From Kudoa neothunni (taxonomy: Eukaryota; Animalia; Cnidaria): DNA of 64,000 nucleotides. Within the stretch, counting starts at the first letter, position 1; each line of letters starts with the position of its first letter. Made by a program: the position numbers and the translations under genes. The DNA lies in contig OZ199839.1 of the NCBI GenBank assembly GCA_964304625.1, forward strand, positions 11,636,578 through 11,700,577, given 5' to 3'. This document shows, in pieces, positions 25,253-57,276 of this stretch. A model generated the notes under the pieces. It saw only the letters and a list, made by a program, of their open reading frames with translations. It was not told the origin of the DNA and ran no database searches.

Positions 25253-28200
25253 ATGAAAATAATTTTGATAACATTATTTTTAATTGCCTCCAAAGTTTTG
25301 ACTAATGGTAGTAATTTCGATGTGAACAAATGAAAATTCAATTTTCACGTATTTATTACATAGTGAATAACTTGGAAGAATGTAATATTCATTACGCATA
25401 TAAGGCTAATTTGAATGTGCTGGATGTGAGTATAAACATTCCAAAGCGACCCGTATACATTGATGTCGGCTGGAAGTTGGTAAATTCACAAAGCAGAACC
25501 CCAATTCTGATGTCTCGGAAAAGTTTGATCAAATGTGATAGTGATGGTGCATGTCCTATGTCAATTTTTGACGTAAGCAGATTGAACTCCTATCTACTTT
25601 TCATTGATACAGACGCGTGCTTACAAAGAGAGCCACTAAAAATATACAGAGGTAAATTTCAGGATAACCAATTAGATAAAAATCTCATCCCTATTATCTA
25701 GATAGAATAAATATTGATATTGATTATATTATAACTGAAGATTCAAAAATAGTACTTCAAAGTGAACTCTTTAAGCATAAGAAATATATGTGTCACATTA
25801 TTATACGAGGAAAAAATCATTATAGTGCTGTTAGATTAGCATATGAGTCAATATACAATTATTGTGATGAACCTTTTTATACTATACCCCAAAATTTCCT
25901 CGGTGTGATATTGACAGTTGAAGTAAAGGACATAAGTTATCCGATTGATGTTACTATTAAAAGTGATTTAATATTTTAGTTATTTTTCATAACTCATTTA
26001 GAAAATATGTTGAGAGAGAATCCATATTTATTTGATATTATTGACATTCATAGAATTATGATAGAATTTGATAAGAATTCTTTTGATAATTATAATTTAT
26101 ATTTGATTGATAATCTTCAATTCAATGAAGAAAAATCTGAGCTCTATCAAAAAGAAAACAAAGTGTCAAAAAGAACGCAGTCATCTAGTCGGAAAATTTT
26201 ATTGCGATTATTCTTTTATTTTTGTCAGAGTATCTTAGATTAGAGAATATTGAAAACAAAAAAAGTTTTCTATTACACATGCATCTACGTAAGAAAATTA
26301 TTACAGATTTTAATATAATTGAATTTAGGTAATATTGAGGAAGATATAACTCTGATTAATGAATTTAGTCGGTTCAAAATAATTGTAGACTCAAATTATT
26401 ATGGATATCCTATCAGATACGTATTGGATGAATATAATGGAGATAAATTAGAGAAAAGATTTACTTGTAATGAAGACGATAGAAGTGGTTGCATTGGATT
26501 TGTTGTTGATAATGTTGTTATTTTTGAAAAGGCATTACTAAAATCCTACAGAATAAAATGGAGGCATGGGTTCGAATATTTTGAAAAATTAATTCGATGG
26601 AAAGCTACGATGATAAAATTTTATCATTCAGTTGGGTCCAATAATATAAATGTTTGGTCAAATATACCAGTAGAATACAACCTAAGTTGTTTCTACACAT
26701 TGACTAGGGTTGATACTTTGTGGGATGGGTACCATGTGGCGGGAACTTACGATTCGTATGGCCCGCATTCTCATATTGGCTATAAATCATGCCAAAATTA
26801 CACAATTGACCTTTCGTCTATCACTCCCAAAACGTTGCACATATATATACCTCAGCTGAATTATGTGGATTCCATTAGAAATATATATGAAAAATATAAA
26901 TTTCGAATTTCTAAATTCGAAGATGGGCTCAAAATAACAACAGTTTTCAGAAAAGAATATTGTAATATAGAATTTGTTGATTTAAAAAAAAAATTAAAGT
27001 ACATGTATTCCAAAGAAACTATGTTCAGTCAAAGTTATGATGCATATACCTGTGAATCTAAATATTCGTATCCATCAGATATTGAAAAAAGCAATATTGT
27101 TGGAATTTATTTAAAATCACTTGAAACAGACAGCGTCTTCTATGTTGATCTACTTTACAGTAATAAATACAATATGATGTATGATAATTTATTAAAACAT
27201 ATAATAGACGATGAAGACTTCAATGTACAAATTAGTCGGTCAGTTTCTGGCCAACTGAGCCTTGAATTTACAGAACCAATGGATATTACTTCATTAGATT
27301 ATATAAAGATATTTCAAGTGGATGGTCTTAAAAATGACTTGCAATTATTTCATAAGGAATCTAATTGGAAAAGCGATGTTAGGGGAAAATTATCCCAATT
27401 AGGATTGGGAGTATTATTAGCTAAAACTGTTTACTTAAAGATAAAATTTCAATCTGGTTCCATTTTTAACAAAATTCTATCATTGCGTAAGAAAAATTTG
27501 GTTGATGTGTTTATATGAATTTTTATTTTAGCTGATATTTCGGTGGATCCTTATGTGAAAGTTAATGAAAGAAATGTTGAAATTATTCCTCTGAATGTCG
27601 TAAATGTTGAAGGAGAATGTAAATTGGTGTTAGATTCATACAATGGATCTGACGAATATACAACATTAAGACAATCTTATATCGATAAATGCAACGAAAA
27701 AATAGTTATTGAGAATCTAAAAAAGAAAAATGATATTTATATCTACAGAGACAACCAACTGATTATTAGACAATCCTTCACTTTATGTATGATTAAATTA
27801 TTCCATTAAGGAAATTCCAAATGAATATTGCAAATATAATAATTACTTTAAATATTTACTGAAATATGAAATATTAATTACACTATTAAATTGTACTATT
27901 TTTTATAATATTATGATTATATTTAATAGTTTATTATTTAAAACTATAAGTATAATTGATTCAATATTATAATCTTGATAAATTATAGACAACAAAAATT
28001 TGATAACTGGACTGGAATACTATAATGATAAAATTTTGATTCGTCACAATAAACAAATTAATGAAGATTCAAGTTGCACGATTGAGGTTAAAGAGATTGA
28101 TACAAATGTACAAATATTATCTCAAAAATGCAATCCTGCTACAGATTCCTGTAATGCTATTAAAGATTGTACTAATGTCACCATTGATATGGTATATAAT

Positions 28201-31200
28201 AAGATATTTAAGCTTAAACTTTCCGTCAATGATGATGTGGAAGAGGTTAACGTTCGAGAAAGTGATTATATGGAAATTAGTAAAATGCTTTAAATAATTA
28301 TTAATGATAGTTCCATTTGAGATAATTTGGGAACACCGGTGGGAGAAAAACACATTAAAAATATTCCATCGAATGTCTGGTATTGATGTCAAATGCTGTT
28401 ACAAATTCGGTGTCACTAATAAATCCAAAAATAAACATTTAAATGGAAGCAAAATGTTTCATAATTGTCGGCCCGTAGAATGCAATAACTTTATCTACAG
28501 GCCTCGATCACTTTATGATTTATCGAAAAATTATACACACATAATTTTTAGTTATCAAATTGAAAGAAAAACCTCTGTCAAGTATTACAATATAGGTATG
28601 TTTAATATTGTAGGCACTTGTCTCATTTTTGTCTATTGCAGTAAGGCCTTGATATAGATTAATTAATGATTGATTAGTGTTTGTCAACATAAAAAGTTCA
28701 CTAAATTCTGTTAGTTAACCTTTGAAGAGTTCTAAATACTAAATTTAATTTTTGGTTTAATCAAATTCAAAATTATAGAAATTGGTGGCCTCGCTATTGC
28801 GTGGTTTTTTGGTAAAATAATCCGATTAGTCCTATATTTTATTATTATATAAACAATGTTAGGAATATCTCAGAGAAGCATAGAAGATAAAATCCTAATA
28901 ATTCAATATTACGAATTGTTTAATGCGAAGATCAGGTGTCAATATGATGATAATGAAGCATGTTCGCCTACGAAGTATTGACCAGATTTTAGTTTTCGAG
29001 AAAGAAGAATAGGTCATTCCCCTCTATCTGTGCGATATTATTAAATAAAGTTACTTGGTGTGTGCAAGAATTTCGATTGAGTGAATACGAATTTCACTTG
29101 GAAAATACAACCAGATTGAGAGTGGGTTGAATAATTGGATTGTTAGTATGCGAGCAAAAAAGAGACAAAATTTAGAATTACGGAAAGGCAATTCTTGAGA
29201 AAACATGATTCTGATCAAAAAATTTCATTTTAGTGATGGGTGGTTTTGTAAATTCAAAATTGGTTGAGTTTAAATAACAGCAAGCTCGATAAATAGGCAA
29301 CTAGCGCTGATATGTCAGTTAATGAATGATTGAAAAACTTTTAGAAGAAATAAGTAATTATAGTCATAAAAATAATTTTAATCCTGATAAATCTATTCTT
29401 TGCGAAAAACTTTCCCAGTGTACACATACATTAAAAAGGAAATCTATGAGAGAGGTTGAAAAAATAAAATAAATAATTTCCCCTTTGGTAACTGACTCAT
29501 TATACGGCAATAGCTATTGCTTTATGTTGTTGGTAAGTTTCAACGAAATAGCTGAATATCTGTAGCCATTTTTTATCTGATACTAAAGGACGTAGATAAT
29601 AAATTTATTGAAAAAAGTGGAAACGATTATATACTACGAGATCAATACCTTTCTTAACTCAATAAATAATACATTTAAAAATATCAAATGAATTTTTCTC
29701 CCTAAAATTGTAACTAGCAACGTGCAGGCAATCAGCCTCAGTATTATTCTTAGTTTCAAAACTAATTATGCATAGATTTCGTACACAATTCTTTTATTTA
29801 ACGTGGATACCACAAATGCCTCGGGATACACGATATAATGCTGTTTAAATACCCTAAAAAATGTCTGAGAAACAATCAGTAGTTTTGTTATCGTAAATTG
29901 TTTCAAGAATCCTCCTATTTTTGGTAGTTGTGGTTTATTCGATTAAAAATATTTAATATATATAATAATAAATAATTAATTGATTCTAATTATGAAATGT
30001 ATGTAATTATTAATGGGACTATTTGTGTCTCGTTTGCTTCGATTATTTTAGAAGATCTCGATGATGTTGTCGATATGGATGCCACTGAAACTGTTTATGA
30101 TAATTAATCTGAGAGCTATGGCATAAGAAACTAAAAATTCCTGTTCATAATTAATATGGCGACTTTGATTTCGAATACAAACAGTTTCAACGAAACAACT
30201 AAAAGTCTCAATCAGCATAATTAGAAAAACCTTCAGCCCTGTTCCCTCTACATCCTGTTATGGATCGTTATAGGAAATATTTAAACCACAAAAAACTAAA
30301 ATGAATTTCTATCTCGTCAAAAAATTTTAATATTAATATTTTGTGAGCATGCTCGAGACCTCGATATGCGAGGAGCCTCGTTTTTGCGTGGTAAATCGCA
30401 TTCCCCACAAAACCTCCCTATATCGAGGCTTTACTGTAATTTTTTAATGGCTGAGATACATTAAAAAACTAAAGTTGTTCTCGATCTATCTTATGCTTAA
30501 AAATACTATTAATTTTCAAACGGGACCTGATAGGACCTCTATTATTTGTTTAATTTAATATACAATCTTAACGTTTTTATTTTAAACAACAAATAAACCA
30601 ATATGAAATCAAATTAAAAGTATTATTTATAGATTTCTTTAAATTATATACGTTAACGTTGAAATGAAATGATAGCATAATTCTTATGTATTAATAATGG
30701 TTAATCATGAATTTTTCATAACAAAGGTGTTTCCGTTCAGAGACAAATGCATATGAATATTGGAAATCATATCCATTCGAATTTTAAAATGTTGACATAT
30801 ATTTTATCTAAAATACATAAATTGGATGAGTAGATATTTTTGATTTCGCTAAAGTAATTTAAAGCAAATATTTTATTGTTTAAATTTAATTATGTAAAAT
30901 TCTTCATTTTCTGCAACAGAAAAGAATGAAGTATTTAAGTTTTTTAGGCACACGTTATTTCCTTACGTAGGTTGTATTGTTATAATGTCGACAACTCAAA
31001 ATTTAGAAATAAAACGATAACTGATAATCAGAAAAATTAAAATATATTATAACTATTACTTAAGATTGTTCAAATTTATAACATTTTTTATTTATCACTC
31101 GTATATCTATTACTATATATTTCATATTTAAGAATGGATGTAATATGTTAAACTCGCTCATCCTTTATATAAAATAAATATTAGAACAAAATTATTATTA

Positions 31201-31646
31201 AATTTAATATTAGTTAAAAATTTGTGAGTTTAAATAATTTTCTTAAGATTGTATAATTTTATTCTGAATTGACCCTACTAAAAATGAAATTCACGGATGA
31301 GACTTGTGTTACTTGTGCAAATATAATATAACATTTATTATAAATAAATATATTAGGTCATTCCAAGCATGATTATATGCTTGCGAAATACGGTGATTCA
31401 ATTTATTATAGACCCATTTTTGAAGCAGAAGTAACAGAAACATCCGATCAAATGTGGTATGTACATAAAGGTGGATTATTGAAAAAAGTTACGGAAAACA
31501 CAAAGAAAATAGATGTTAATAAACTGACATGCATGTCATTAAAACCAGAAGCCAAATTTGACTACAAATTAATTATCAACCATGGAGCCGCCCAAACAGC
31601 AATTTTTATTGATTATTATCCTGAAAAGAATACGGTATATTGTTGA
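25253..31646 (+). CDS. Segment A: signal peptide plus ~11 tandem ~95-aa beta-sandwich-like modules (5' part of the giant adhesion GPCR, or a secreted paralog)
   Basis: Signal exon 25253-25307 (MKIILITLFLIASKVLTN). Phase-1 exons 25364-25651, 25702-25962, 26002-26288 (two +1 homopolymer frameshifts), 26329-27486 (~4 modules), 27532-27786, 27989-28261, 28311-28595, 31357-31634/31646. The first module is 288 nt and ends QREPLKIYRG, like the D modules of segment C (QKKEPILIKRG). Confidence 0.7.
28639..30436 (+). mobile_element. Decayed pogo/Tigger transposon in an intron of segment A
   Basis: TIRs cagtaaggccttgatatag and ctatatcgaggctttactg-TA (17/19 match). Relic CENP-B HTH (GKY..IE..L..WI..MR, FSDGW..KFK) and FLP..TS..Q....II.SFK motifs. 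Confidence 0.8.
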
Positions 31647-34420
31647 CTTGATAACCAATATTAAATTAATATATTATAAATGATTCTGTAATTGGATTGA
31701 TTAACGTAAATTATATTTTTTACTTTAAATAGAATAAATATTAACATTTTTATAATTTTAATCTTTTAAAGTTATTAAAATCGATCTTTATCAAAGTATA
31801 GAGTAATTAATATTTTGTAGATTTGACTAAAAAATGGGATAATTAATTGTTAAATATTTAAATATATCTTTTAAGTCAGATCTGACCATTATAACAGTAT
31901 GAACGACATATTTATATTTTTGAATATTAACTGATACTTTAAGTTTAGTTTAATAGTTTGAAATAAAGTTTAATAAGATTTCATTCAATTTAATGCAACC
32001 TAATGCGGTTTTGACCGATATAGAGATATTTTCCGTTTTTGAAGCAATAATATAAAATAAATATTGTTAATATTAATAATTTAGGTTATCATGTTTGATA
32101 TTTTCAGAATCTAATTTAATAAATATTATAATTATAATATTACGGACTAATTTAATGTAGGGTTGCATCGATATCAAGTTTTTGCTTGTGATCGATTTCG
32201 TTAATTTTCCAATATTGTAAAATAATACCATGAAAACATAAATTTTTTGAAAAATTAATAGGATGTCTATGCCGCATTTCAAAATTTAACCTAAAATTAG
32301 TAATGTTTAACTTTATTGACGTCCAATGCATTTTTTTAATACTATCACGCATTATAACTAAAAAAGTATAAATTATTTAATATATATATTTCTATATTTA
32401 TTATATTTCTGAAATAGAGATATGGAATGGGTGAGTATGATAACACCTTTGTTTGCTTCAAGAACTATACATTTTGATATATTAATTTAACGTGACATGA
32501 TACGTTATGCTTGTTACGGCATAGCAAATGATTTTTACGTTTTTTAAAATAATTTATTTTACTCTTATTTATGTGTAACTAACCCATTTAGTTGTTTATC
32601 GTATTAACTACTGTACTTTTAAATTCCATTTATGAAATATGTATGAATTATTTTGTGGAGTTCATAAAGTGATACCAATTAATCCATCTATACATTCATT
32701 CTATATGAATAAAATCCTTTGTGTGTCAACGTGTGTCCATAAGTACGCATGTGCGACTAAAATATTTTCCATATAGAGAGACATTTATGAAATTTTTCAG
32801 GAATCACCACGTTTCAAAAAATCTTTAAATTGTGTTTACATTACCGAATATTCCCAAAGGTGTTTATAAAATAATGATTTTGTCGATTTAAAGTTTGTTA
32901 AGCAGATTACATGAGTCCAATTGTAGGATTAACGCCAGCTTATGTCATGGTGACCGTCGGTTGAAATTAACTTTTCCCCCTTATATGCTCCATCAAATGT
33001 AAATTGAGCGACAGAATCTGACTTTTATTTATTTTTGACCTGGTACTTTGTGTGTCTGCACTAATACACTCTCTATGTCGGGAGTTTTAATGTATTTGAC
33101 TCGATAAGCACACTTCGAAGGTTCTATTACTCGTTTTAGACATAGAAAAAAGTCAATATTCGCATCTTTAATAGCGAATTGGTAGAGCATGCTATAATAT
33201 GATGGATTAAAGAATTATAATTAGAGGCCGTAGTTTTCGACGACTATTTTTAAAAAATTCTACGTTTATTTAAAAACTCGCGTATGCGCATCAGAAAACA
33301 TTATTATCAAGCATAATGTCAATGAAATAAACATGAATATAATTTTTTAGAAAATTTTTCCTTAAAATATAATATTTAAAGCATTCTCAGTCGTTCAAAC
33401 GCCGAATGCACAGTATAGCATTTGAGAAAATGCTTTAATTTTGAGATACTTCTTTCCACGGCTGTAGGTGAGAGTGATGTATGCACCGATTCTAGGCCCA
33501 CCCTAGATAATATGAGATACTTCGATTTGTTTATTCTCTATTATCCAAGACCTATCATTTTATCTTTTCTTGTTGATCGACGTTAACATATTTTGGTATA
33601 TTTTTAAGATTAATTTACCAATTTTAATCTATTTATCTATTTACTTGGATATATAATTTCCCATTCATCTGCTTTTTCCGTCCATAATAAAATGAAAAAG
33701 AATCGGCGAACTATCTCGATTATAACAGTAAAAGTAGAAATATGTTAAAAATTTCGACACTTTAGACGTTTATCGATTTCAATCGAAAATTACGAACCCT
33801 AATTAAAATTGATGAAAAAAAGCAACCCTTCAAAAATATTACTTTAAATGTTAAATTATGTAGGTGACAATAATATTTTTAATATTTAACAAATTGAGTA
33901 CAAACTCAAACATGTTAATTGGGAGATTCATTATATACAGCCAAAGTTACCACATTAATCGAAGAAGTGGCTTAAAAAAAGATTAGTCTATTTGAGCTAA
34001 AAAATGTGATTGTGCTCTCAAGAACTGGATTCATGCAAAAAGGTCCAGTAGGGTATTCTGATTTGCATCACTTTTATTAAAAACGTCGACAACATGAGGA
34101 AGAAAAAGTCATGTCAGACAGTTATATACTAAAACCAATTATTTCCTGAAATACAACGACCAACTATAAGTCCTTCTATTTCACTCTTTTACACAACTAT
34201 AGATCTTATCCAAACGATTGATCTAATTAATAATGCTTATCAATATCAAAGTGTTTCTACAACGATTAAACAACCATATTTCAAGTCATCAACCTGTGCA
34301 AAATTTTTCGTACATTTTAAAACAATGAATTCTGATAATTCATAATACTAGTACATTATGAAACCATCTTCCATATCATATTACATATTTCTTTATAACG
34401 TTTCCAAAAAAGATGTTTAA

Positions 34421-35700
34421 CTTTCTGATTGCTTTCGGGTCTAATAGACCACAGAGCATTTTGTGATCAAAATTTTTTGTACTTGTTGGTCTCAAACACA
34501 ATTTAAATCCCGTGTAATCTCCCAAAATACACACATGAATATTTCAATCAGTTATTTTATAAAAATATTAAAGTTATAAGGGAAATAAACACAATTTATA
34601 CACTTGGTGTTTTGGGGGCTGTATTAGACCCCGCAATTTTATAGACTTAAACAACTGTAAAAATTATTTTATGCATCATATCAAAATTAAAGCAGATTCT
34701 ATCGTACATTTTCAGAGAAAATAAGGAAACAGGTATCGACGATATTCAGCGAGAAATGCCGAAGACATCTCTAGAAATACGAGCGCCTCGGTTGACATAA
34801 ATTATGAAGATTACGAAAGCGATGACAACAAATCCATTAATATATTACAATTTATTCATAACTTTTCAAAACCTTTCGAATTCTATTATGGTGATGTTGA
34901 CTCTCCCAATATATTTTCAAAAAATATGGCGTAATGTGTTCCATTGAAATCCCAAAAACCTCAAAGTGTGCACATAAAATATTATGAACGTTGTCCTGGT
35001 GTTTCCGCTTATTTAACCCGTAGAATACAGGAATTTGTGGAGTGCTCAGATATACTTTTTCGTGGTGGCGTTTATTAAAACTTAATGTGGAATACAAATA
35101 CAATTGTTCTGTATTGTTTTAATCGATTTTATTTGTGCAAAAAAATTAATGTACACAACACTAACTTACAAAACACTAAAATAGGAATAACGTGCTACCA
35201 CTCGTTAATTCATGTTTACATAGTAATACACAACTGTTAATCCTTTACACGAAATTTAATCCCATGCATGCAACATATATCGTCATACTCTTTGCTGAGA
35301 ATAATTTTAAATCAACATTTTTGTGCCTACATAGGTGTACTTACTTATACGATAATATTGAAATCTCGATTGGAGTTTTTAAAAATATTTTGGAATAAAG
35401 ATAAAAGCAGAAAAATATTCGATAAGTGTGAACAAATTCTTCCTATTTGCCTAATACCCTGTTCGATTTTAACAGCTGATGAACAGTTGATTGCTTCTAG
35501 AAGGAAATATCCTTTCGTACAATACATTCCTTATAAATCGACAGTCTACGGAATCAAATTATTCTAGTTTGTTGTTACATCCACTAGCTTTTATCGTAAT
35601 ACTTCTGTCTCCCTGTGTAAACAAAATAACCAAAAAGCTAAATGTTTCGGAGAAAATATTATTTTAGATCTTGTGTCGTACCTAAAAACAGTAGTCGAAA
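34421..35700 (+). mobile_element. piggyBac relic (5' part) containing a Penelope-like fragment
   Basis: TTAA|C.. end with a gggtctaatagacc motif echoed at 34616-34633. ORF 35268-35567 has LTADEQLIASRRKYPFVQYIPYKSTVYGIK (PGBD catalytic region). Confidence 0.7.
34852..35103 (-). mobile_element. Penelope-like RT N-terminal fragment
   Basis: TPQIPVFYGLNKRKH matches the Penelope RT motif PxFYGLPKxHK. Confidence 0.5.
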
Positions 35701-37063
35701 AACAACGAATTCATACATTCTTTGTTTAAGACTTTGTTGTAAAAAAGCTCTCAGTTTCTCGAAAGAAATTACATTTAATGTGTTATGATAATGCATTTCT
35801 TTCATTTTACCTCAATTAACTTAAGATAAATATCAATTAAAATTTGTGTTGTCGTAAACGTCTTCAGATTCATTTGAACCATTAATCAGTTGTATCGAAT
35901 TTGTTAATTTAATACGTTTATTTTTATTTTTATGAATAATAATAGAATACCTTTTGAACGAAAAGCCGAATTAATAATATGCATAAACAGTTATCACTAC
36001 TTATTAGATCTTGCGCTATATTTTATAAACAACCATTCAGCATGCTCATTAATGATATAATTTTAATTAAACCATCAATAGCATGTTGAAAACAGATTAT
36101 TTTGTGAATAAAAAACTATGATTATCACACAAGATTGGAACGAACCAACTTTAATATACAGTTAATTCTACCGTTGGAACATTAATCCCTCTCGTATATA
36201 GTCGTTATGTCATGTTTTTACAATAGTGTCTTAATTCATCGACAGAATTTTTTCCAAATTAGCATACAATCTTAAAACAAATTTCCGCCTTTAATGAGCC
36301 AATAAAAATGTATAGTAAATTTTGAGGCGCTCGGAAAGTTAATTAGAATAAATAAAGCTATATAATTACATGATTTATGTTTTCTTAAAACTTGCTACAT
36401 GTAAAAATTATATAATTATAGGCATAAGTAAACAATAAAAAGGGATTTGTTTAATATCTAATTATCAATAAAATAATTTTAAAAATGTTTTTCCGTGAAT
36501 TTATTTTTCTGACTGATATTGTAAATTCTAGAATATGGTCACCCATTGAACACACTGGTGGTTCATAACAGCATTTCTTATAATATTAAATCTAATATAA
36601 TAATGAGGATAATATTACTTTTAGTTTATAAAGCAATGACAGAATTTCTCAGCTTTTTAAAGTGTAACGCACGCTTGCGAAGTATCTGTCTATTGCGTGA
36701 CCTCTCTCTAGTCTAGTTGAACCACGCAAAAGCCACGTCAAACTGTGTATCAAAAGGGGTAACAAATTAATTTAAATGATATTATGTGTTAAATAAAAGT
36801 TAAAATAATATTATCGCCAAATTTATTAAGTGTGTATAATATAAAATCGTATTAATATATAATAAATTAAATAATTTCAAAAAACAATAACCGTTTAGTT
36901 TTTTGCAAAAAATATATAGTGCAAATATAAAATATGTTCCTTTTGTAACAGATCTTCTGGCCATTTTTTTGTTATTCAAAATTAACCAATTTATCTTAAT
37001 ATTTTATTATAATAAGAATTAATATTTGATGATTAAGATATATTTTAGTTAAATTCACATGTA

Positions 37064-44403: not shown

Positions 44404-45140
44404 TTAAATAGGTTTCTCCTTCGATGGCGGTCGCATGAATTGATTAAGCGGCTCTTCTTCTGGAATTTCTTTTCTTCCCTGTTTTTTACTCCAACTGGAC
44501 TTCGCTCTTATTTTGATGCGTTTACTAATATAAACACATACCTAAAATTAATTGCTTTGCCTTTGTTTAGAATTCTTCTGAAGTGGCTCATTACGATATG
44601 GTTAAAAATGTCCTCTATTCGATTTACCAACACTGTATATCAGGGGTCTCCAAACTTTTCTCTTCATCGACCCCCTCCATAGATTTTATTAAAAATATTA
44701 AAGTATATTCAGCGTTTTGACTGTAACAATTAAAATTATGTGCAATATCTCACATTAATGTTCTATTTTCGGTATATAATAAAATGCAATATTACACTAA
44801 CACAAAAAACTTTTACTAACGATGTAACATCAAATATATCAGACAAATCTTAGATATTTGTAAATTTACCACAATAAACCTGTTTTTCATTATAAATTAT
44901 ATTCAAATGACCTCCTATGTTAGGTCTTCTGTATATGATTATAATTACATGTTTTTGCATAAATATGAATACAGCGCAGATTTTAAGATTAAATTACATT
45001 ATATATAGAAAAATTAATATTTATTCATAGCTGCCTTTAATAGTTAACAAGAATGTCTTAATCTTTACCCTTAGATAGTGTTCCTTAGTCTGAGGTCGCT
45101 TCAAGAGTTTTTGAAGTGTCCACAGGGGTTCAAACGACAT
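44404..45140 (-). CDS. Candidate small spliced gene (~90 aa, unknown function), antisense to the GPCR locus
   Basis: Phase-consistent chain MSFEPLWTLQKLLKRPQTKEHYLR / VYC / VLVNRIEDIFNHIVMSHFRRILNKGKAINF / RAKSSWSKKQGRKEIPEEEPLNQFMRPPSKEKPI*, with GTAAAG, GTAAAT and GTATGT donors and a 35-nt last intron. Needs a 10-nt micro-exon. Confidence 0.35.
44641..44680 (+). mobile_element. hAT (Charlie-type) terminal fragment
   Basis: CAGGGGTCTCCAAACTT is a typical Charlie/hAT TIR; no partner end found. Confidence 0.45.
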
Positions 45141-45721
45141 TTACTTGTTGTTATTATTATTTTCGTAGCTTTTATAATTTTGTTTGAAATCAATTTAAAA
45201 ATAAGACTTATCTTTTATAGTCAATTATAAATTTAACGTAAACTATCGTTATTGTTTTGTATATTATGATATCAACAAATACTAGTGATCATTTAAATTC
45301 GAGATATTTTAAAATGAGGAAAAATTAATTTATTACTTTGATTAAAATAATTATTTAATGAATGATTTTGAATAGCGCATTTATCTTTAACTATGTCATT
45401 ATATGCATTTTTATTAATTTATCAAAGAGCACATTTATTAGAGTAAGCGCGGTAGTTGTTCTAATCGTACCCTTTAAAATTATAGACAACAAATAAAATT
45501 TTTAGAGATATATCAAATATTTTTTTAAATTTATACTTTTATAGGTTTAATGAGGGAGTATTAAAAAATAATTCATTTGGAAGTTGGTATATTTAAATAG
45601 TAATGAATTGGTGCTAAATTTGAAATTTAATTTAAACAATTTTATAAATCATTTAAAATATGCAGTTTCCATGGTATCGGTTTTGAATATTGGCAATTTT
45701 AGTGAATATCGAGTACACCCA

Positions 45722-46180
45722 AAGCTGAGAACAGATAGCCCAGTGGTGTGGTGACTGGACACGATACCCGCCAACTGATCAGTCTATTGTTTCCGTATGA
45801 GTGTACCACTATCCCGTAATGAGAGCTGTTATTAGAATGGGATTGCACTATAAGTGTAATTTCCTTTGCACTTTTAGTTCAATCTAACAGAGAAGGTTGA
45901 ATTAGACGTTTTAATCGTCGGATGCTCTAACAGACCTGAAATCTCGGTAGAGCCTAAGTCCTTATGGATTTGTGCGTACGGTATGGGATGGTGCATGCAC
46001 CACCAATAAGAATGTTTAGTAGGTTAAATACCCACACTACTCAAGAATGATAAGGACAAAGTGGTAAATGTTACTCGTCTTACGGTGTCTACAGCGTTGT
46101 TGACGATGGTCTAACCATCCATATCCTCATAACCTAAAAAAAATTCGCCAGGGGCTTTACCTTGCAAACAAAAAAAAATT
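45722..46180 (+). ncRNA. Structured RNA / tRNA-headed SINE-like retroposon
   Basis: GC-richer non-coding island with pol III A-box TAGCCCAGTGG (45736-45746), about ten stems using G-U pairs on the plus strand, 5'-3' closure, a ctttacctt tail and an oligo-A end. Confidence 0.5.
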
Positions 46181-46593
46181 AAAAAGAGTAACGGAAAAAA
46201 CTAGAAAATGGTGCTATCCTAATTAAATATATTAAATTTAATGATTTAGCATGCCTTCATTTTTATCTTCTTCCTAGTATACGTAATTCTGGTTCCGAAT
46301 CTTAATTTAAAAATACATTTTATTATTAGTAAGATGTATAGTACGGAATATTTAGAAGTATAAATTGTTACTTAATTTTAATATATCCATTGTCATTATC
46401 GTTCAAGTGAACTGCTTGGTGGAGACATATTAACCAATCAAATAACGAGTTATCATTAATAATTATTTTATTTAATTAGTTATCTCCTTATTCACTCATA
46501 TTCACATAATAAATATTTAAATACATCAATTATTTTCGTATAAATTAAATTTTTGTTCTAATAAAGAATGATATTAAAATATTTTTTGAAATA

Positions 46594-49500
46594 ATGGCTA
46601 CGTTCATATCATTTCTTGTTTATAAATTCATCTACGGATTTTATTAGTATGCGTTTAAATTATAATCGTATATTTATTATTCTCTAAAAATATAAATATG
46701 AGAATATTTATTATTTATAGATATATCTATCATCCAAATTTGTTGGTGACAAATTAACTAATACATATTGAAACTCTTTTACTCCTATATATATATATAT
46801 ATATATTGTCCTCTGTTAACGATTATGATAATTTAGAAATATTAAGCACTGAATTGGATTATTATTGGGAATCTCAAAACCTGAATATTGTATTGACGAT
46901 AGTTTCAGAAGGAATATTATCTGAATTCAACATCAATTACCACCTGTGTGAGGAAAATCCAACGAAGAAAAATTCATCGCAGAGACAACAAACAATTAAA
47001 TGCGCTAACAACAGATGCAGTTGGACAGTAGAAAATATCAAATCTGACAAAAATCATATTTTAACGTTTTCATCACAAAATCTTATAAATCATATGTCTT
47101 ATTTTATCAGGAATGGTGAATGTAATATTTCATTATTGGGATACAATAAATTTTTCAATTGCCATATAAATTTTAGACGAGTGTCCCTTCGTTGGCGTTA
47201 AACAAGATGACAAAGCTACTGGTGGCGTTTCAATAATAATAGAATTATTAGGTGTTATGCCGAAAGTCTTATACATCACTTATTCCTTATATGAAACAAC
47301 TGATGGAAACAAACAAGTAATGCCAGAATCTACTCAAAAGATACCCTGCGTTAAATATGAATGCACATTAAAAATCCCAGACATATCACAAACAAAAAGC
47401 TACGATATTATGTTATCCATACCAAAATGCACCGATAAAATAAATTTCAAAATAAAAAATTGTACTATTTATATACAAATATATTAAATAATTTTCTCTG
47501 TAGCTCCCACCACTTACGACTTAGTGTACAATTACCAAATAACCAGTTCCAACAAGGCCACCCTTACAATAATAATATCGAAACTTGCAATACCATATCA
47601 AAAAATTACTTTCGATTGGTTTTTAAAATTAAGTAAAAGCTCAGTACCTCTTCAATCTTCCACTTCATTGGTTGAACTTACAGATGAAAATTCATCATTT
47701 TCATTTCAAATACCAAATATTGATCTAGATTCGGAATACTTCATTGATTTTTCATCCGACTATCTCGCTGCAATGCCTCATAAAACATTGATTGTTAAAT
47801 GTATATTTATAAATTTACTTTAATATATTTTTATATCAAAATTTTAATTAAGCGAAAATCAATTATGAAATAATACAGAAATGGAACGATGGCAAACTTT
47901 CAATTTCATTAAGATTGAATGTACCAATAAATAAATTATGCATTGATATTGAAATTACCACTCTTAAAAAAACGAATTCTGGAATAATAGAAAAATCCAC
48001 AGTCACTCTGAATGCAACTTTATTTTGTGACCAAAGCGTTTGCGACTATGAATTTGAAAATGTGACCAAAAAAGATCATTTCAAAATCGCGTTAGTATCG
48101 AATTTATTACAACCCAAAGCTCCTATCATCCTTAAGAAAGGTAAATCATTATTAAATAATTTAGAAATTGCAACAAATTTTTTAGAACCTACTACATTTA
48201 CTATAAATCAAAAATACGAAAAAAATGTATTCTTGGTGGAGTTTTCATTGCATAATAAATACAATGAGATATTCATCAAATGGAGTTTGTCGGACACAGA
48301 AGGAAATTTGGTCGAACATTCTGGCAATTTATTCAAAGAGGTTGTGATTTACAATGATAAATTTGTCCTCAATCTTGGGAAGCTGTACCAAACTAAAGAA
48401 TACAAATTAAAGTTTGAATCCGAAGAACTTGATGGGAATAAAGAACTTGCAATAAATAGTAACAACTAATCAAATATTGAAATAGTTGACCATTCCTAAT
48501 TTTGTTTAAAACAATAATTATAATATGTTGTATCATTTAAAAATATATTATCCTGTATTTAACTAATAATGATAATTTTAGAGAAGTTTGACTATGTCAT
48601 AAAATATAAATGGGATTATCACAAACTAAAAATAACATTGGAAATTTCACCGAGTGAACCTCGGATGGATTTTACCATCGACTATTCTTATTATGAAAAT
48701 GATAAAAAACCAGAAAATGTGGTTGAAAATAATAAACCGATTCAATGCGACACAAATATATGCACGTTTTTAATTAAAAATATAAATTACGCTGTCGATC
48801 ACACATTTTCGTTCCATGTACCAAGTCTCGTCGATAATGTTCAGTATCAAATAAAGAAAGGTACTTAGATTATCGAAAATGGCTTGTAATTCTGTTATTA
48901 ATTATATTATTCAGAACCATGTCCGCTGTCAGATATACAACTGAAACCTCCAGAAAACGAGGATCGCACTCTAATAATTCAACTGTTATTTGCATACGAA
49001 GAGTTATCGGTTGATTATTCAGTTTATGAATCAGATGAGAATACTAGCTTAATAATTCATGATCCAAATAAAAAGATAATTTGTGAATCGACCATATGTG
49101 AATTATCCATCCCAAAGCTAATACTTACAAAGTCTTATAACATTGTTGTGAAAGTACCCTTGTGTAAGGAAAATTTGACGATATCAACTGAAAAAGGTAC
49201 AATATACCACTCATAAAAATAATAAATTTTTCTAGCTCGAAGCAATTACACATTAACATACAGTTATCAAAAAGAACAGTCCAACAAAGTTACACTTACT
49301 CTACAATTAAAGCTTTTATTACCTTATGATAAAATCGAGTTGGATTGGTCTTTGAAAGCAAATTCCAATGTCGTTATGAGATCATCTTCAAAAACCGAGC
49401 TGACTCAAAAGAATTCCATATTTTCCTTATCTATACCAGAAGTTGATACAGGAAAAGAATATACAATTGAGTTCACTTCCAAATATCTCGTGGAAAAAAC

Positions 49501-52500
49501 AAATGGGAATATCATAATTAAAGGTATGTAATAATAAACCCGCTAGTTCATTCGCAGTCATTTATTTAATTAATGATATATTAATAAATGAATATTATTA
49601 TAATTCGACATTTTTCAAATAAAAATAATTCAGAAATAATTGTTCAATTTATGTTTTATTCTCAAGAAATAATATGCAAGATAAACAAAATTTAATTAAA
49701 TTAGTGATTATACAATGGATTATAATTTGATTTCATTGTATACTTATTATTTATGATAGATGATATATATTAATTTATATCATTTAATTAATTAATTGTG
49801 TGAATATCACAAAAGAATTGATATCACCGTGAAATTCATGTTAAACCTAATTTTAACCCTCCGGTATCCAGGAGAAAAGCTTACGCACATACATAGACGT
49901 GGACATTGTTTCCAACCACCCAAAAAACATCGGATTATATAATTGACTACGAATTATTTAATTAAACATATTTTGCATAATATTAAATTTATTCTGCATT
50001 CACCGTAATTGCCTTGTTCACACGGACTGCATTTTGTGCGGCATCGTTTTTGGGAGATCTGTTACAAACACAGAAATGTTAACGTTTTTCGAATCTATGG
50101 TTTACCCTTTCACTTTTGTTTTGTATATTTGCTTTGGATTCCACTATGAGTTCTATTGCTAGCTGTTTTTGGAAATCTCTTATGACCAAAGCTTTTATTG
50201 GTTAAGTAATTGAGAGTTTCTAGATCCATATAGTTGAAATTCATTATACACATCTGCTTCTACTATATTGTAAAACACAGCATTTGGCCAGCGTCTAATG
50301 GCTCATTCTGTAGAATAGCATCGCACAAGCTGATCGAAAGTGTCAACATCATCATTTATCGCATTGTAATATAGGATTATCTTAGGTTTTGATTTTTCCA
50401 TTTCATGACCCCTATCAGAATCAATGTCCCAGGAAATACTTTGAGGTCATTAAGGTTAACCTTTTTGTGCGTTTATTCTCAATATTATTTTATGTTAAAA
50501 CAATAATATTATTCCTTAAAATTAAACTATGTATACACTTTTCTAAGAAATCAATCCGTTTTATTTATTATAATTATACAAGTTTGGGAAAAAGTATAAA
50601 CAATGTAATTGCGCTAACGTAACGTATAGTTTATATGGTTTAAAATAGTTGGTTGTGTATATTGATTGCTAACAAATATAATAATATAGTTCCAATAAAT
50701 TATCAAATCAACAAAAAGCACGCAGATGATAAAGTTCAACTAACAATACAGCCAGAAATAGATGTGAATCAATTAGAAGTCAAACTTGAATATTCCACTT
50801 TGAAAAAGACCCCTAATAAATATGACGTGAAGGAGACAAGATCAATAGATATAACGCTAAAATGTATCGAAAAAGTTTGCGAATATCTTTTGGAAAAAAT
50901 TGACAAGAATGAAAACTATTACATTAAAATTGTGCCAGGTTTATTGCAAAAGAAAGAACCTATTCTTATCAAAAGAGGTATTATTTTTCTGTATTATTAT
51001 TAATATAATATATTCAAGAACCGACTACATTTGAGGTTAATTATAAATATAACAATAATGAATTATTGGTTGAGTTCACATTGAAAATTAAATTTGATGA
51101 GATATTCATCAAATGGAGCTTATCAGACTCAATAAATGTTTTGGTCAAAAATTCTAACGATCTGTTCAAAAAGGTTGTGGTCAAAGATAACAAATGTACC
51201 TTAAATCTTGGACCGTTGTATCAAACAAAAGAATACAAATTAACATTTGAATCCGAAGAACTTACTGGGAAGAATGAACTTGTAGTAGAAAGTAATAATT
51301 AATAAAATATCGAAAAAGTTGACTATTCCTACTTTTATTAAAAATATTAATTATAATATAATGTATAACTTAAAAATAAAAAAAATTTCTTGTTGAATTA
51401 TAAATGATAATTTTAGAGAGATTTGAATATGCATTAAAACATGAATGGGATTATCACAAACTAGAAATAACATTGGTAATTTTCTCGAATGAACCTCGGA
51501 TGGAATTTGCTATCGACTATTCTTATTACGAACAAGGTAAAAATATTGCTGATGCGATTATAAACAAAAAAACAATTATATGCGAACATCATATATGTAA
51601 TTTTGAAATTGAAAATATCAACTATAAAGTTGATCACATATTTTTACTTCATGCCCCAAATCTTGTCGATCACCTTCAGTATGAAATAAAGAGAGGTGAT
51701 TCAAAACTCAACAATGTGTTTCCATTTTCTTAATTTTATTATATTTAGAACCATGTCCATTGTCAAGTATACAACAAAAGTCGTTTGAAAACGATAAACT
51801 GAATCTAATAATTAAACTTTTATCGGCATACGAAGAGTTATCAGTTGATTATTCAGTTTATGAAACAAGTGAAAATACTGATTTACTCACTCTACACTCA
51901 AATGAACTGATATCGTGTATAATGAATACATGCGAATTATCCATTTCAGACTTAACACTTACAAAGTCTTATAATGTTGCTGTGAAAGTACCCTTGTGTG
52001 AAGCAGGCAGGACTCTATCAATCGATAAATGTATAATATCCGAATCATAAAAATAATAAATTTTTTTAGCTCGAAGCGATTACACAATAACATACAATTA
52101 TCGCAAAGAAGAGTTCAATAAAGTTACACTTACTCTACAATTGCAGCTTTCACTTCCTTATGATAAAATCGAGTTAGAATGGTCTCTGAAAACAGGTTTG
52201 AATTCAGAGGTCGTTAAGAGTTCATCTTCGATGACTGCGCTGACTAAAGAGGTTTCCTTATTTTCATTATCTATACCAGAAGTTGATATAAATAATGAAT
52301 ATACAATTGAGTTCATTTCCGAATACCTTGTGGAAAAAATAAACAGAAATATCCTAGTAGAAGGTATATAATAATAATGTTGTTTATTTCATTCGCATCT
52401 AACTATTTAATTGATACTATATTCATGATCTAATTTTAATAAAATTCATTAATTTTTCCAAATTTAACAATTAAGTAATAATTAATCTATTTATACTAAG

Positions 52501-55500
52501 TTATTAGCAAAAAATTTAAAAAAAATTAAATATTATATAAGGATTAGAATTTGTTTTTCATTGTTTATTTATTATTTAGAATACTTAAATAGGAAGTTTC
52601 ATTATTTCGATTAATTAGTCTTATGAGTACTACTAAATAATGGATATAATGTGGAAGTTTATAAACAAAAATTAAATTAAAGATGTAATTTACATTTATA
52701 ATGGGTTTGTAATTCAAATTTGACAAATAATATATTTTCTATACATAATAATTAATAATACATATGTACAATCCCTGTTATTTTTATGTTTATTATAAAA
52801 TAAAATTACGAGGGATAGAAACAATTTTTTAAAAAACTGCATTCGATGATATAATCTTATATAACTGATTACCACCTTTCTGAAAGTTAGCTAATATTCA
52901 CCAACAAATTTAGTAATTGTGTAAACTATTAAAGCAAATAATTCGATTTTTAATGTTACAAATTTTTTAAAATGATTGTATTAATTTAATCCTAAACTAT
53001 AACATGAGAATTTCAATTACTAAATTTTACATTTTAATCTTCCTTGTAGGTGGCGCGTGACCATGGGGGAGCCGATTGGGCCATTTGTGGACCATGATAA
53101 AAAAATATAAAACGCTTCAAATTTTTATTTAATAACTCAGCTCATCTCTTTGAGTAATTAAACGCAATACATGGATAAATTGGGTTCCAATTTTCAGTTT
53201 TTGTTATTAATCGTGAGCATGTTAAAGTAGGTCAGCTACCTCCAAATTAATAAAATTATGAGCGTTATAGTCTGTGAGAGTATTAAAGACAAAAGTAATC
53301 GTCGAGTTAATCAATTAAAAATTAAAATAAGCTGAAATGGAGTAGGAACATGACCTCGCCCGGACAGTTTTAATGACAAACGTGTTTGTCGCCTTTCAGA
53401 AGGCTCCGAATGGATTAAGTATATTTTGAATGTCTCATTGTTTTTCACAACACTGTATTAGACAGCGATGAAAAATAATTTTTCAGTATCGTGTCGAGTT
53501 ACAAAAATATTTGATTTGACGGTCAAAATATGGATATTTTTTCAAGAAGTTGAAAGGGGTTATTGTTGTTATAAGCATTCTGCGAGTGAATGTATTTATG
53601 ATTATACTAAATGAACTTTCCGACTCACCACTCACCAATTGCGTTGGATACGAGTCATGAGTACTTAAATTACTAAATTAAATTAACACATCGTTTTTTA
53701 GAATACAATAAAAAATTGTCTTCCAACAAGTTCTACACCAATAATAACAAATTTATATAAGAAAACTATTTGAAATATTTGTTACATACGATAACTTACT
53801 TTTGCTTGGGCTGATTCGCATAAATTAATTTACCGAAATTAGAACGAAATAATGTGGACTTGCTATCTTTGATCCATTAATAGAGAAAGCATCTGATATG
53901 ATGTTGTTTTTTTGAATAATCAACATCGTCTTCGTAGGAATCGTCAGATTTTGATATTTTAAAATCAGAATCATCATTGGAATTAAAATTAAGATTATTT
54001 TATAGAAGCTATTCGATATCTCTGCATGCATTATGCATTATTCGCGGTCATGTTGCTTAAGTAATGATTGAATATTATTTTCCAAGAATAAATAACTTAA
54101 AAAAGGATTAAAAAAGTTACGTTTTATTAACATAAAAAGAATGTTAAATTGTTTGTGTACGTATTAATTTTCGTTACCCTCATTTGAGTTTAGCTAGAAA
54201 CAAAGATGCAATTTTTGAGTTAAATAACTTCCACCAGTAAAATCTAATTTAATTATTTAAAAAAAATAATAAAAAGTGATACAATATTACTTTTTTTGAA
54301 AAATAAAACAAATAAATAATCTTTTTCTCATAAAAAAGTGGTATAGTTATTTTTCTTAAATAATTGAAACGAATAAAAATTTGTTTGTTACAGAAGTCAT
54401 CTTATTACCCAGACCCTTCTAGATGAATTAAATGTAGAGATCAAAATCCTTAGGGTCACAGATGACCCCACATTGGACCGGGGGGTTAATTGCAGAATAA
54501 ATAATCTATTTTATTATTAAGTTCGTAAAAATTAATATTTTTAGAGTTAAAATCTTAGCCTGAACTTTTTTGTTGTTAACAACTATAATAATTTAGTTCC
54601 AATAAGCTATAAAATCAACAAAATCCATGTCGATGATAAGGTTCAACTAACAATTCAGCCAGAGATAGATGTTAATCGATTAGATGTCAAACTCGAATAT
54701 TCCACTTTGAAAAAGACTCTTAATAAATATGACGTGAAGGAGACAAGATCAATAGATATAACGCTAAAATGTATCGAAAAAGTTTGCGAATATCTTTTGG
54801 AAAATATTGACAAAAATGAAAACTATTACATTAAAATTTTGCCAGGTTTATTGCAAGAGAAAGAACCTATTCTTATTAAAAGAGGTATTATTTTTCTGTA
54901 TTATTATTAATATAATATACTCAAGAACCAACTGCATTTGAGGTCAAGTATGAATATAACAATGATGGATTATTGGTTGAGTTCACATTGGAGGATGACA
55001 TAGAAGAAATTTTCCTTAAATGGAGTTTACTGGGAAAAGGAGAGAAATCTATAAAAAATTCCAATGATCAAATTAATTTATTACCATGTGAAGCAAAAAA
55101 ATGTTCCATCGAACTTGGCAAGTTGGACCAAGCTGAACAATATAAATTCGCCTTTCAGTCTGATGAACTTCAAGGAGTCAGCGAATTAATAATCGAAAGT
55201 AGATATTTTTTCATTAAATATAAATATTATTATTCGTTAAAAATTGATTAAATAAATTATTTTTTTATTTATATTCACTTTTTCTAGTTAACTGGGAAAT
55301 ACTTTTGACAAAATCAGAAGAATTGGATAAGACAATGGAACTCAATGACGAACCAATAGTATAGTTAATTATGCCGACTTTTCATATGGTATGCATATAT
55401 TAGATTACCGGTAATTTTATAAAAGCTTGGAATAAAATAGTGTATGAAGTAATCGAAACAAGTAACTAAAACCACGTACAATTACAATTATAATAACTTT

Positions 55501-57276
55501 CAATTTAGCACCAATTCAAAATAATTCAACCATTGAAGACAGCCCAAAAAAAGAGAAGGAGGAAGAAACTTCGTAAATAGATCAAAATAATGACATTAAT
55601 ATAATAATTATCTTGTTTGTAGAATCTTCTTAAAACAAATTAACCTTTTGGACAAGAATATCATAAATATTGACGTTACTGAGGAAGTCGATTCGGACAA
55701 TATAAAATTGAAGACAATCACAACACAAGAGGCTTCAAAAACGATATATTTTGCTAAACCAATAGCCGACAATGAAATTAATGACATGTTACAGAATTCA
55801 ACGCTTGCTGTAAACAACGATGAGCCATTGCAATCCACTTATTTGCACATGGAATTTTCAGCTGATGATTCTTCCGCTGAAGCGGACAACCAGAGTAAAA
55901 TTGTGTTGGCCGTAACGAAAAATAAGGAAATTAACAATTCAACACAAACGAGTGATATTATTGCAGGAGATGTGCTAATCATAAAAGTTTCAAATAATCG
56001 GACAAAAAAATTAAATATAACGTTCAGTCAAATTATAAAAACCAATGATAAAAAGAACAATTTTAGATGTTGCACGTTAGATAGTATATTAATACTATTA
56101 ATTATTGTAAATAATAACCATGTTTCCTTATAAAGGTAAAACGTTAGCTTGGGAAACTAAATACTGCTCAATTTTACATGAAGTCCCTATTTCAACATTC
56201 CTCACCAATTACACATGCACTTGCAATCACACAACAAGTTATGCAATCATATACGATATTTTTGACGACGATTCGACAAAAAATATTTATTATCAACATC
56301 AAATATCCCTAATCACAACTGGCATTTCGATGGTATTTTTGTTCCTCACATTTGTGTGCATTTTATCATCTAAGTAAATTTTTTACGGTAAATAGAAATT
56401 GAATGTTAACTGTTTGATTATAGAGTTGTTAAAAAAATAAGAATTTTGGCTCAATTGTGGATGTGTGTGGCTATATTTATATTCCACTTGGCATTTATCT
56501 TGGGAAATGTGTTTAACAAAAAACATCGTTCCTGTTTTTATGTTGCCACCTTTTTACATTATAGCCTTATGAGTCAATACATGGCGTTGTTATTAAATTC
56601 TCTTGTTGTTGTCAAAAACCTTTTATTAACAATGAAAAAAGTAAAGAAAATAATTATGAAAATTATAGCACTACTTTTTCTAAGTGAGTATATTCGTTTA
56701 AACTTAATAATATTTAAATTTTAGTCATTCCTATATTTGTTGCAGCAATTTCTAGCCAATTATTTAGTGCTAATTACGTCATAAAAACAAAGTATTTAAG
56801 TTATATCAATTTTCATTGCAATTTATTTGAATATTTATAGTTGTATTCCACATGGTTGGCTAAAGTTGGTGACAATCACGATTCCTGGAGTGTGTATACT
56901 ATTTTTTAATCTAATGGTATTGTTCCTGGTATTACGCACAATCTACAGGTCCGAAATTACAAATAAGAAAAAATGTTCAATCAATCAACGAGCAAAACAG
57001 TTACTGTTCCTATTCATGATGTTAGGAATGCCGATGCTAATCCAATTTTTATCCTTCTTCATTAAAAGTGAAATAATTATATTGGTTTCCAATTGTTTAA
57101 ACACGTCAATGGGAACATTCTTATTTTTCATCTTTGTTGTTGGAAACAAAGAAATGAGAACTCATATAAAATCAACACTTGGAACAGGATCAAGCCGGAA
57201 GAGGATAATATCAATGAATAGAAGTAAATCCACAACCAAGATGACAACTTTTACATCAAGATATAAAAAACGATAA
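46594..57276 (+). CDS. Adhesion GPCR (class B2): 15 tandem extracellular modules + GAIN/GPS + 7TM (segment C)
   Basis: 15 phase-1 module exons from 46837 to 55198, GAIN exons 55288-56084, GPS CCTLDSKTLAWETKYC..CTCNHTTSYAII, then seven TM helices including TM3 SCFYVATFLHYSLMS, TM5 IPGVCILFFNL, TM6 LFMMLG and TM7 LNTSMGTFLFFIFVV; stop at 57274-57276. Possible own signal exons 46594-46617 + 46721-46745 (MATFISFL/IYLSSKFV/EILS), otherwise spliced from segment B. Confidence 0.9.
49857..50455 (-). mobile_element. piggyBac 3' fragment in a GPCR intron
   Basis: TTAA|CCCT end. The minus strand reads KPKIILYYN...VDTFDQL..YS...RRWPNAVFYNIV and a Cys-rich tail. Confidence 0.7.
53048..54485. mobile_element. 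Composite DNA-transposon relics (hAT-like fragment plus piggyBac terminus) in a GPCR intron
   Basis: Ends ...gggtcacagatgacccc...GGGG|TTAA at 54486-54489. A GC-rich hAT-like terminus lies at ~53048-53095, with decayed coding traces on the minus strand. Confidence 0.4.

Follow-up and report, generated by a model that had tools for sequence, protein, structure and literature searches.

The receptor locus

The analysed stretch (the window) comprises 64,000 nucleotides (nt) of the cnidarian Kudoa neothunni (contig OZ199839.1 of assembly GCA_964304625.1, positions 11,636,578 to 11,700,577 of the forward strand), whose genome of 40.26 Mb is held in four contigs and has a GC content of ~28%. [quoted passage not shown] Between 25.3 and 57.3 kb the stop-free stretches of this strand follow one another at a strikingly regular spacing, and 40 GT-AG exons run from the ATG at 25253 to the TAA at 57274-57276 in one continuously open frame of 11,070 nt (3,689 codons plus the stop), free of stops both within exons and in the codons split between them. 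The exon chain was built by script and by eye, and its joins were verified codon by codon. A reading of this stretch from its letters alone (the original prediction) had put the protein at ~3,900 amino acids behind the signal peptide at 25253; the start holds, and the chained frame is somewhat shorter.

The encoded protein consists, in this order, of a signal peptide, ~34 modules of ~90 amino acids, a linker, a GPS motif and a seven-transmembrane domain (7TM). From the ATG at 25253 the first exon encodes a hydrophobic leader of 18 residues (MKIILITLFLIASKVLTN) that ends at a phase-1 donor, and an ATG-initiated hydrophobic mini-exon, likewise closed by a phase-1 donor, lies 60-120 nt 5′ of module 1 in all five paralogues compared below. 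The modules are spread over 32 exons, 30 of them of phase 1-1 and 28 of them 249-297 nt long, much as had been predicted (mostly single phase 1-1 exons of 250-300 nt). The non-standard ones are an 831-nt exon with three modules, a short exon of 186 nt and the two exons that stand beside a phase-0 intron. In one place the predicted exon structure has to be revised. The interval 26329-27456 had been taken for a single large exon; it contains a stop-free 48-nt intron at 27160-27207, and because par4, par5 and par6 (three of the paralogues) carry stops within the same intron, it is most likely two exons.

The gaps between the module blocks

The module exons fall into three blocks, separated by 8,277 nt (31635-39911, intron 10) and 4,341 nt (42496-46836, intron 18). 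In the original prediction the blocks were proposed to splice together in frame, from donor 31635 to acceptor 39911 (phase 0 on both sides) and from donor 42496 to acceptor 46836 (phase 1 on both sides); every coordinate named there, including both junction pairs and their phases, was verified. Gaps of 8.3 kb and 4.3 kb far exceed the usual introns of this gene (39-125 nt), and this would also suit two or three separate transcription units, with blocks 1 and/or 2 encoding secreted or separate module proteins and block 3 alone fused to the GPS and 7TM. Read-through at donor 31635 meets a stop after three codons, so that a secreted product of block 1 alone is conceivable, and no RNA read bridges the gaps. 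The agreement of the splice phases across both gaps argues against such units, as does the start of blocks 2 and 3: neither has an ATG-initiated hydrophobic leader exon or an initial signal peptide there, and the first in-frame ATG of block 2 (39918) precedes a non-hydrophobic stretch.

A comparison with related loci bears more directly on this question. The check proposed earlier, a scan of the genome with a module hidden Markov model (HMM), gave at least 98 matches, which cluster on two contigs. Counting this locus, 15 carry a homologue of the last 7TM exon, each with a cluster of modules upstream on the same strand. Five paralogous loci (par2-par6, on two contigs and both strands) were aligned exon by exon with the window, and blocks 1, 2 and 3, the linker and the presumed GAIN exon stand in identical order in all five; the 7TM exons are next in line in four of them, and in par4 the 7TM lies just beyond the sequence compared. 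At the junction of blocks 1 and 2, par6 and par4 have a phase-0 donor right after a conserved YYPEK- and an acceptor just before the next module, separated by an ordinary short intron (~220 nt in par6, comparably short in par4) where the window has 8,277 nt. The junction of blocks 2 and 3 has homologous phase-1 sites, with an intron of ~70 nt in par6, ~150 nt in par4, ~1.2 kb in par2 and 4,341 nt in the window.

Both gaps are full of dispersed repeats. Those of intron 10 (~34407-36358 and 37051-39428), two separate repeat families with many copies at 72-90% identity, have ~110 genomic matches at 70-90%, and the ~830-nt repeat of intron 18 (43293-44128) is present in at least 40 copies at 77-82% identity on three contigs. 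The five colinear paralogues share the junctions and two of them (par4 and par6) have short introns there; for this reason the three blocks are very likely one gene, and separate transcription units appear quite improbable. The in-frame joining put forward originally is accordingly upheld by colinear paralogues with matching junction phases. The look of three blocks would be an effect of repeat insertion, because transposon-derived repeats have swelled two introns.

The GPS and seven-transmembrane region

The locus shows three features of adhesion GPCRs: a 7TM of the secretin/adhesion type, a GPS directly 5′ of transmembrane helix 1 (TM1), and a long modular ectodomain behind a signal peptide. 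The exon that precedes and includes TM1 (56148-56373) carries a GPS motif (W..C...CxCNH-T/T-SYAII), a stretch that resembles a tethered agonist, and TM1 itself. Its W, its four Cys and the sequence CxCNH-T/T-SYAII are invariant in all relatives, with H-T/T at the cleavage position and TSYAII as the agonist-like stretch. All 11 relatives match Pfam GPS (best E 5.7e-5), and the window copy reaches 20.7 bits against a cut-off of 22.5.

TM2, TM3 and the start of TM4 are encoded at 56424-56683, and the remainder of TM4 to TM7, a short tail and the stop codon at 56801-57276. As single queries these exons find adhesion GPCRs at weak significance (ADGRE1 at E 0.32 with the TM2-3 exon, ADGRF1 at E 0.049 with the TM4-7 exon), and Pfam 7tm_2 is not reached by window exons taken singly and barely registers in a six-frame search of the whole genome. 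Profiles of the 7TM exons built from 11 relatives give a clearer picture. The TM4-7 profile matches ADGRF1 at 2e-8, followed by ADGRE5, ADGRL2, ADGRL3, ADGRD1, ADGRG2 and ADGRG4, and the TM2-3 profile matches ADGRE1 at 1.5e-4 and ADGRG2 and ADGRL3 at up to 4e-4; in both searches the class B1 receptors rank below the adhesion GPCRs. Judged by these profiles, the 7TM is of adhesion type (class B2). A search of 5.8 billion proteins with the 7TM-exon profile found two fragments, the length window of the search excluding full-length proteins.

Between the last module and the GPS lie ~250 residues, which presumably form a short GAIN domain. They include the exon at 55623-56083, taken as a GAIN subdomain, which is conserved in the paralogues and in a metagenome contig (Logan SRR31175926_40595, L014). 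In a language-model search the neighbours of this exon fall in clusters that carry Pfam GPS (scores 0.82-0.86), which we treat as a lead only. Further upstream, three small linker exons (55288-55358, 55404-55461 and 55509-55572) connect it to the last module; comparison with par2 and par3 shows the first and third to be 83-100% conserved, and the frame closes across all three.

Sequence relationships of the modules

Between 46.8 and 55.2 kb, 15 stretches are linked to one another by BLASTP at 25-90% identity and resolve into a five-module unit, A-B-C-D-E, present three times. Each of these block-3 modules is one exon of 273-297 nt, flanked by AG and GT, divisible by three and of phase 1-1. The motif originally ascribed to the modules, Y-x-[YW]..L-x-I-x-L..I-x-[YW]..C-x4-C..[LI]-x4-Y-x-[IFL]..I-K-[KR], was confirmed by alignment in the 15 modules of 46837-55198, and many modules of the gene carry the C-x4-C pair. 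An HMM of the block-3 modules finds all 15 of its own members at E 1e-26 to 1e-33 and, in addition, 25364-25651 (module 1), and nothing else below E 0.1 on either strand of the window.

Sixteen modules of the window (the 15 of block 3 and module 1) are therefore related by direct sequence comparison, and an HMM iterated on the window alone stalls at this number. Iteration over several paralogues adds only the counterparts of module 15 (par4 at E 6e-13, par5 at 2e-8 and par6 at 8e-12) and of module 18 (par2 at E 4e-7 and par3 at 2e-9). Positions 15 and 18 through their paralogues apart, the other 18 modules have no detectable similarity to block 3 by HMM or hhalign, and hhalign comparison of position profiles of three and six sequences gave nothing at or above 50% except module 1. 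The original description of ~34 related copies is therefore borne out by sequence for 16-18 modules (16 directly and 2 via paralogues) and not for the remainder.

Searches outside the genome place the modules near, and not within, known families. Pfam searches of single exons returned no 7tm_2, fn3, Ig or Calx-beta, and even with E allowed up to 1, neither the 15 block-3 modules nor any other exon scanned matched Pfam fn3. The nearest Pfam entries are the NDNF Fn(III) family (E 0.041) and a Dep-1 Fn3-like family (E 0.1), a profile search of the PDB sequences with the module gave only IL-31RA at E 0.74, and a block-2 module used as query in a language-model search returned noise only. Against 1.84 billion representative proteins the module profile obtained eight matches at E up to 1e-3, of which four, short metagenome open reading frames on short contigs, are true relatives of the module. 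The four large ones (P0002, P0003, P0004 and P0007) carry the bacterial-type repeat or Ig-like domains DUF285, He_PIG, Big_9 and MBG and are probably compositional.

Two short metagenome contigs, ENA ERZ28624939 scaffold_2590 (L013) and Logan SRR31175926_40595, carry clear relatives of the module, and on this evidence one or more related organisms are present in the samples behind them. On the Logan contig the modules are succeeded by exons homologous to those for GAIN, GPS and 7TM (34-45% identity), so the same architecture exists in a related organism.

Predicted fold of the modules

AlphaFold predicts the block-3 module A2 as a seven-strand sandwich with a mean confidence (pLDDT) of 80.9. 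The best structural match of this model is CBM56 (5t7a and 6a6c; Z 10.0, root-mean-square deviation 2.1, 80 residues aligned), followed by FN3 domains of cytokine receptors at Z 8.5-8.7, with cytokine receptors, LAR and fibronectin overall at Z 7-8.7; Z values of this size are common among small sandwiches, and no Foldseek match of the A2 model reached E 1e-3. A Tyr in the sixth strand of the module resembles the tyrosine corner of FN3 domains. The three-module exon (26329-27159) was modelled as three beta-rich domains (pLDDT 75), and its model has 65 Foldseek matches with E no higher than 1e-3, almost all of them to FN3, macroglobulin-type or Ig sandwiches in tandem arrays, with E down to 2.6e-5 for tandem FN3 arrays. 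Calx-beta had no Pfam match and is absent from the listed fold matches. The predicted structures support an FN3/Ig-like β-sandwich for the four modules folded (A2 and modules 4-6). This is the fold that had been suggested, along with the absence of a named family, and the latter agrees with the lack of any meaningful sequence match in Pfam or the PDB.

Several observations weigh against the assignment of the whole locus as one adhesion GPCR gene. The window's own GPS and 7TM exons, taken alone, lie under the curated cut-offs of Pfam, and family assignments were made exon by exon, not on the spliced full-length protein. No PDB sequence is matched by the profile built on the presumed GAIN exon; of the 7TM with GAIN/GPS originally described, the adhesion-type 7TM and the GPS are supported by the profiles and by Pfam, and the GAIN domain stays presumed. 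Autoproteolysis at the GPS is uncertain because Thr takes the place of the customary Leu just before the cleavage site (position -1). Thirteen of the ~34 modules lie outside both the sequence-linked set and the folded one, and the case for them consists of size, phase, position and coding constraint, and exon 4 (26002-26187), with its weak donor, is the least certain exon of the model. One RNA contig set and three runs of raw RNA reads that carry this species label gave 0 reads on 42000-47900, a result that speaks neither for nor against the gene model.

Exon organization of the ectodomain

All exons lie on the + strand. Exon 1 (25253-25307) contains the start codon and the signal-peptide-like leader described above. 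In block 1, the exon of module 1 (25364-25651, 288 nt, phase 1-1) matches the module HMM at E 1.8e-5, or 3e-16 after iteration, and reaches 79% in hhalign. Module 2 (25702-25962, 261 nt, phase 1-1) has an open frame with GT-AG borders, is kept in the five paralogues and has a ratio of non-synonymous to synonymous substitution rates (dN/dS) of 0.24-0.29. The short exon of module 3 (26002-26187, 186 nt, phase 1-1) is kept in par2 and par3 only. After the three-module exon (modules 4-6, 26329-27159, 831 nt) and the 48-nt intron comes module 7 (27208-27456, 249 nt). Open frame, paralogue comparison and dN/dS support both module 8 (27532-27786, 255 nt) and module 9 (27989-28261, 273 nt), and module 10 (28311-28595, 285 nt) is kept in par2, par3 and par6; all three are of phase 1-1. 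Module 11 (31357-31634, 278 nt, phase 1 to 0) ends the block with a donor after YYPEK- whose place and phase are those of par4 and par6.

Block 2 begins with module 12 (39912-40197, 286 nt, phase 0 to 1), followed by module 13 (40252-40545) and module 14 (40586-40879), both of 294 nt and phase 1-1; these three have open frames and are supported by comparison with paralogues. Module 15 (40924-41217, 294 nt), besides its HMM-matching counterparts in par4, par5 and par6, has an in-register hhalign match, and module 16 (41278-41547, 270 nt, phase 1-1), supported by the paralogue comparison, has a weak in-register hhalign match to type E. Module 17 (41596-41868, 273 nt, phase 1-1) again has an open frame and paralogue support, module 18 (41921-42202, 282 nt) is the one with HMM-matching counterparts in par2 and par3, and module 19 (42244-42495, 252 nt) closes the block with a phase-1 donor that is homologous in par2, par4 and par6.

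Block 3 holds the three copies of the five-module unit. The first (46837-48458) is composed of A1 (46837-47115), B1 (47177-47461), C1 (47504-47800), D1 (47853-48140) and E1 (48186-48458). The second (48582-51291) contains A2 (48582-48860), B2 (48915-49196), C2 (49236-49523), an intron of 1,166 nt, D2 (50690-50977) and E2 (51019-51291), and the third (51417-55198) contains A3 (51417-51695), B3 (51749-52030), C3 (52070-52363), an intron of 2,233 nt, D3 (54597-54884) and E3 (54926-55198).

Constraint and probable gene conversion in the receptor family

Against par2 and par3, dN/dS is 0.24-0.93 for all module exons except E3 versus par2, which gives 1.35 on a synonymous divergence (dS) of only 0.06; dS across the module exons ranges from about 0.02 to 1.4 in these comparisons. 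On these values the module exons resemble coding sequence that is moderately constrained, and no exon as a whole shows signs of diversifying selection. The same values bear on whether the gene could be a copy that is silent or in decay, with its function supplied by paralogues. The introns have been invaded by repeats, no RNA reads were found, and a neighbouring paralogue, ~12-23 kb past the end of the window, has stops in several of its module exons, all of which would fit such a copy. In the window, however, 40 of 40 exons are open, the splice sites are all intact, and dN/dS is below 1 outside that one little-diverged exon pair, which makes decay of the gene highly improbable.

The best-conserved module is the middle one of the three-module exon (~26604-26888), which is 92% identical in near paralogues, where its neighbours are at 54-79%, and 59-61% identical in distant paralogues against 26-49% for neighbouring modules; its AlphaFold model includes an inserted loop of low confidence. 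Because it is conserved far above its neighbours, this module is a candidate functional or binding site.

Identity to the paralogues is far from even along the gene. The last 7.8 kb (49461-57262), introns included, two of them long, is 96.6% identical to par3 (11822479-11830272 of the same contig, 135 kb away); to par2, the final 3 kb shows 93% identity, whereas upstream parts are at 72-80%. From exon D2 to C3, dS falls to 0-0.05. The likeness of 49461-57262 to par3 suggests either gene conversion of recent date or a partial segmental duplication. Since the 3′ parts are 93-96.6% and the upstream parts 72-80% identical, the appearance of a constant GAIN-7TM unit on variable ectodomains is best read as largely recent gene conversion. 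The family of ~15 loci in a 40-Mb genome probably grew by tandem duplication of modules (here the A-E unit in three copies) and by gene duplication, and its 3′ ends appear to be kept alike by recent gene conversion.

The neighbouring paralogue with interrupted module exons (11713100-11724000 of the contig) still has an open 7TM exon, and the protein of its presumed GAIN exon is 100% identical to that of the window. Such a copy may be in decay and yet continue to take part in sequence exchange.

Transposon remnants in and around the gene

Within intron 10, the interval 35241-35564 has the look of a transposase remnant by eye and has no Pfam match, and the intron 18 repeat at 43293-44128, which contains no long open reading frame, looks like a non-autonomous element. 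Outside the gene, a transposase of pogo/Tc5 type lies just 3′ of it at 58608-59360 (HTH_Tnp_Tc5 at E 3e-9, DDE_1 at E 7e-14). Fragments of piggyBac-type transposases (Pfam DDE_Tnp_1_7, E 1e-12 to 8e-16) occur at 62424-63205 and 19344-19730; because they are split over frames, they are probably decayed.

Proposed working and the question of variability

In the picture proposed here, all ~34 modules would form a long β-sandwich rod projecting from the cell. Binding to this rod, or pulling on it, might be transmitted to the GAIN/GPS region, upon which the tethered agonist could be exposed to the 7TM and start G-protein signalling, as in other adhesion GPCRs.

A different role was raised by the original prediction, which considered that the receptor might be spliced combinatorially, be variable and act where host and parasite meet; this is speculation, and we regard it as unlikely. 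Its core is that phase 1-1 exons would be left out or selected in varying combinations and yield many receptor isoforms as a variable recognition system. Skipping of any of the 30 symmetric exons would leave the frame intact; the family is a large one, its ectodomains have diverged and its gene-conversion tracts form a mosaic; and adhesion GPCRs in general are known to splice their ectodomain modules alternatively (PMC13197933). No RNA supports such skipping here, however, and arrays of mutually exclusive, near-identical exons were not seen: the A-E repeats are 25-69% identical in the repeat comparison and their order is fixed across the paralogues. Phase 1-1 is the ordinary state for exons of extracellular modules in the exon-shuffling literature, so that symmetric exons are the default of such proteins and do not by themselves imply skipping. 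With dN/dS below 1 outside one little-diverged pair, the average signal is one of constraint and not of diversification, and combinatorial splicing of this kind is doubtful. It is similarly unlikely that the ~15 giant genes together are a diversifying recognition system, in which modules would be reshuffled among paralogues, the decayed neighbour included, by gene conversion and exon skipping would add isoforms.

Relation to known receptors and significance

The closest analogue in design appears to be ADGRV1 (VLGR1), a giant vertebrate adhesion GPCR with ~35 Calx-beta repeats in addition to other domains. Both have ~35 tandem repeats of ~100 amino acids, here putative β-sandwiches, ahead of a GAIN/GPS region, whose GAIN part is here presumed, and of an adhesion-type 7TM, and both would be likely to work as a long tether that passes binding or force to the tethered agonist. 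The present modules differ in having no Calx-beta match, the other domains of ADGRV1 were not detected here, and ADGRV1 is a single gene whereas the present receptor is one of ~15 paralogues. Calx-beta is counted among the modules of adhesion GPCRs (PMC13197933), and FN3 is likewise one of their ectodomain modules, with FN3-bearing adhesion GPCRs recorded in holozoans (PMC12716839). Such receptors share with the present one predicted seven-strand FN3-like sandwiches ahead of a GPS-7TM, but no module here reaches Pfam fn3, and many have the C-x4-C pair.

Two further resemblances are more distant. Structurally, the block-3 module comes closest to the CBM56 family of bacterial β-1,3-glucan-binding modules, but at 10-12% sequence identity and a Foldseek E of only 7e-3, and a shared small sandwich is not proof of a shared function. 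Dscam and sDscam are likewise surface receptors of many sandwich modules, encoded by one exon each in a multigene setting, but the present gene has no clusters of mutually exclusive exons, and its membrane part is a 7TM and not a single helix. As to novelty of the architecture, adhesion GPCRs with FN3 domains have been recorded before (PMC12716839), so its general kind is known; what is new is an orphan family of FN3-like modules, unmatched in Pfam and PDB sequences, at ~34 copies per gene and ~15 genes per genome.

An animal genome of 40 Mb here devotes several hundred kilobases to ~15 giant adhesion GPCRs. Because the standard domain libraries cannot see their modules, automatic annotation is likely to fragment such genes or to miss them. 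If the genes did constitute a diversifying system, the organism's surface receptors would form a variable repertoire, all with the same constant unit for signalling. Old, diverged modules joined to freshly homogenised 3′ ends make the family a clean case of concerted evolution among receptors. A second, independent design of the ADGRV1 kind, with a long rod of sandwich repeats before the GPS-7TM, lets one ask what such rods are for.

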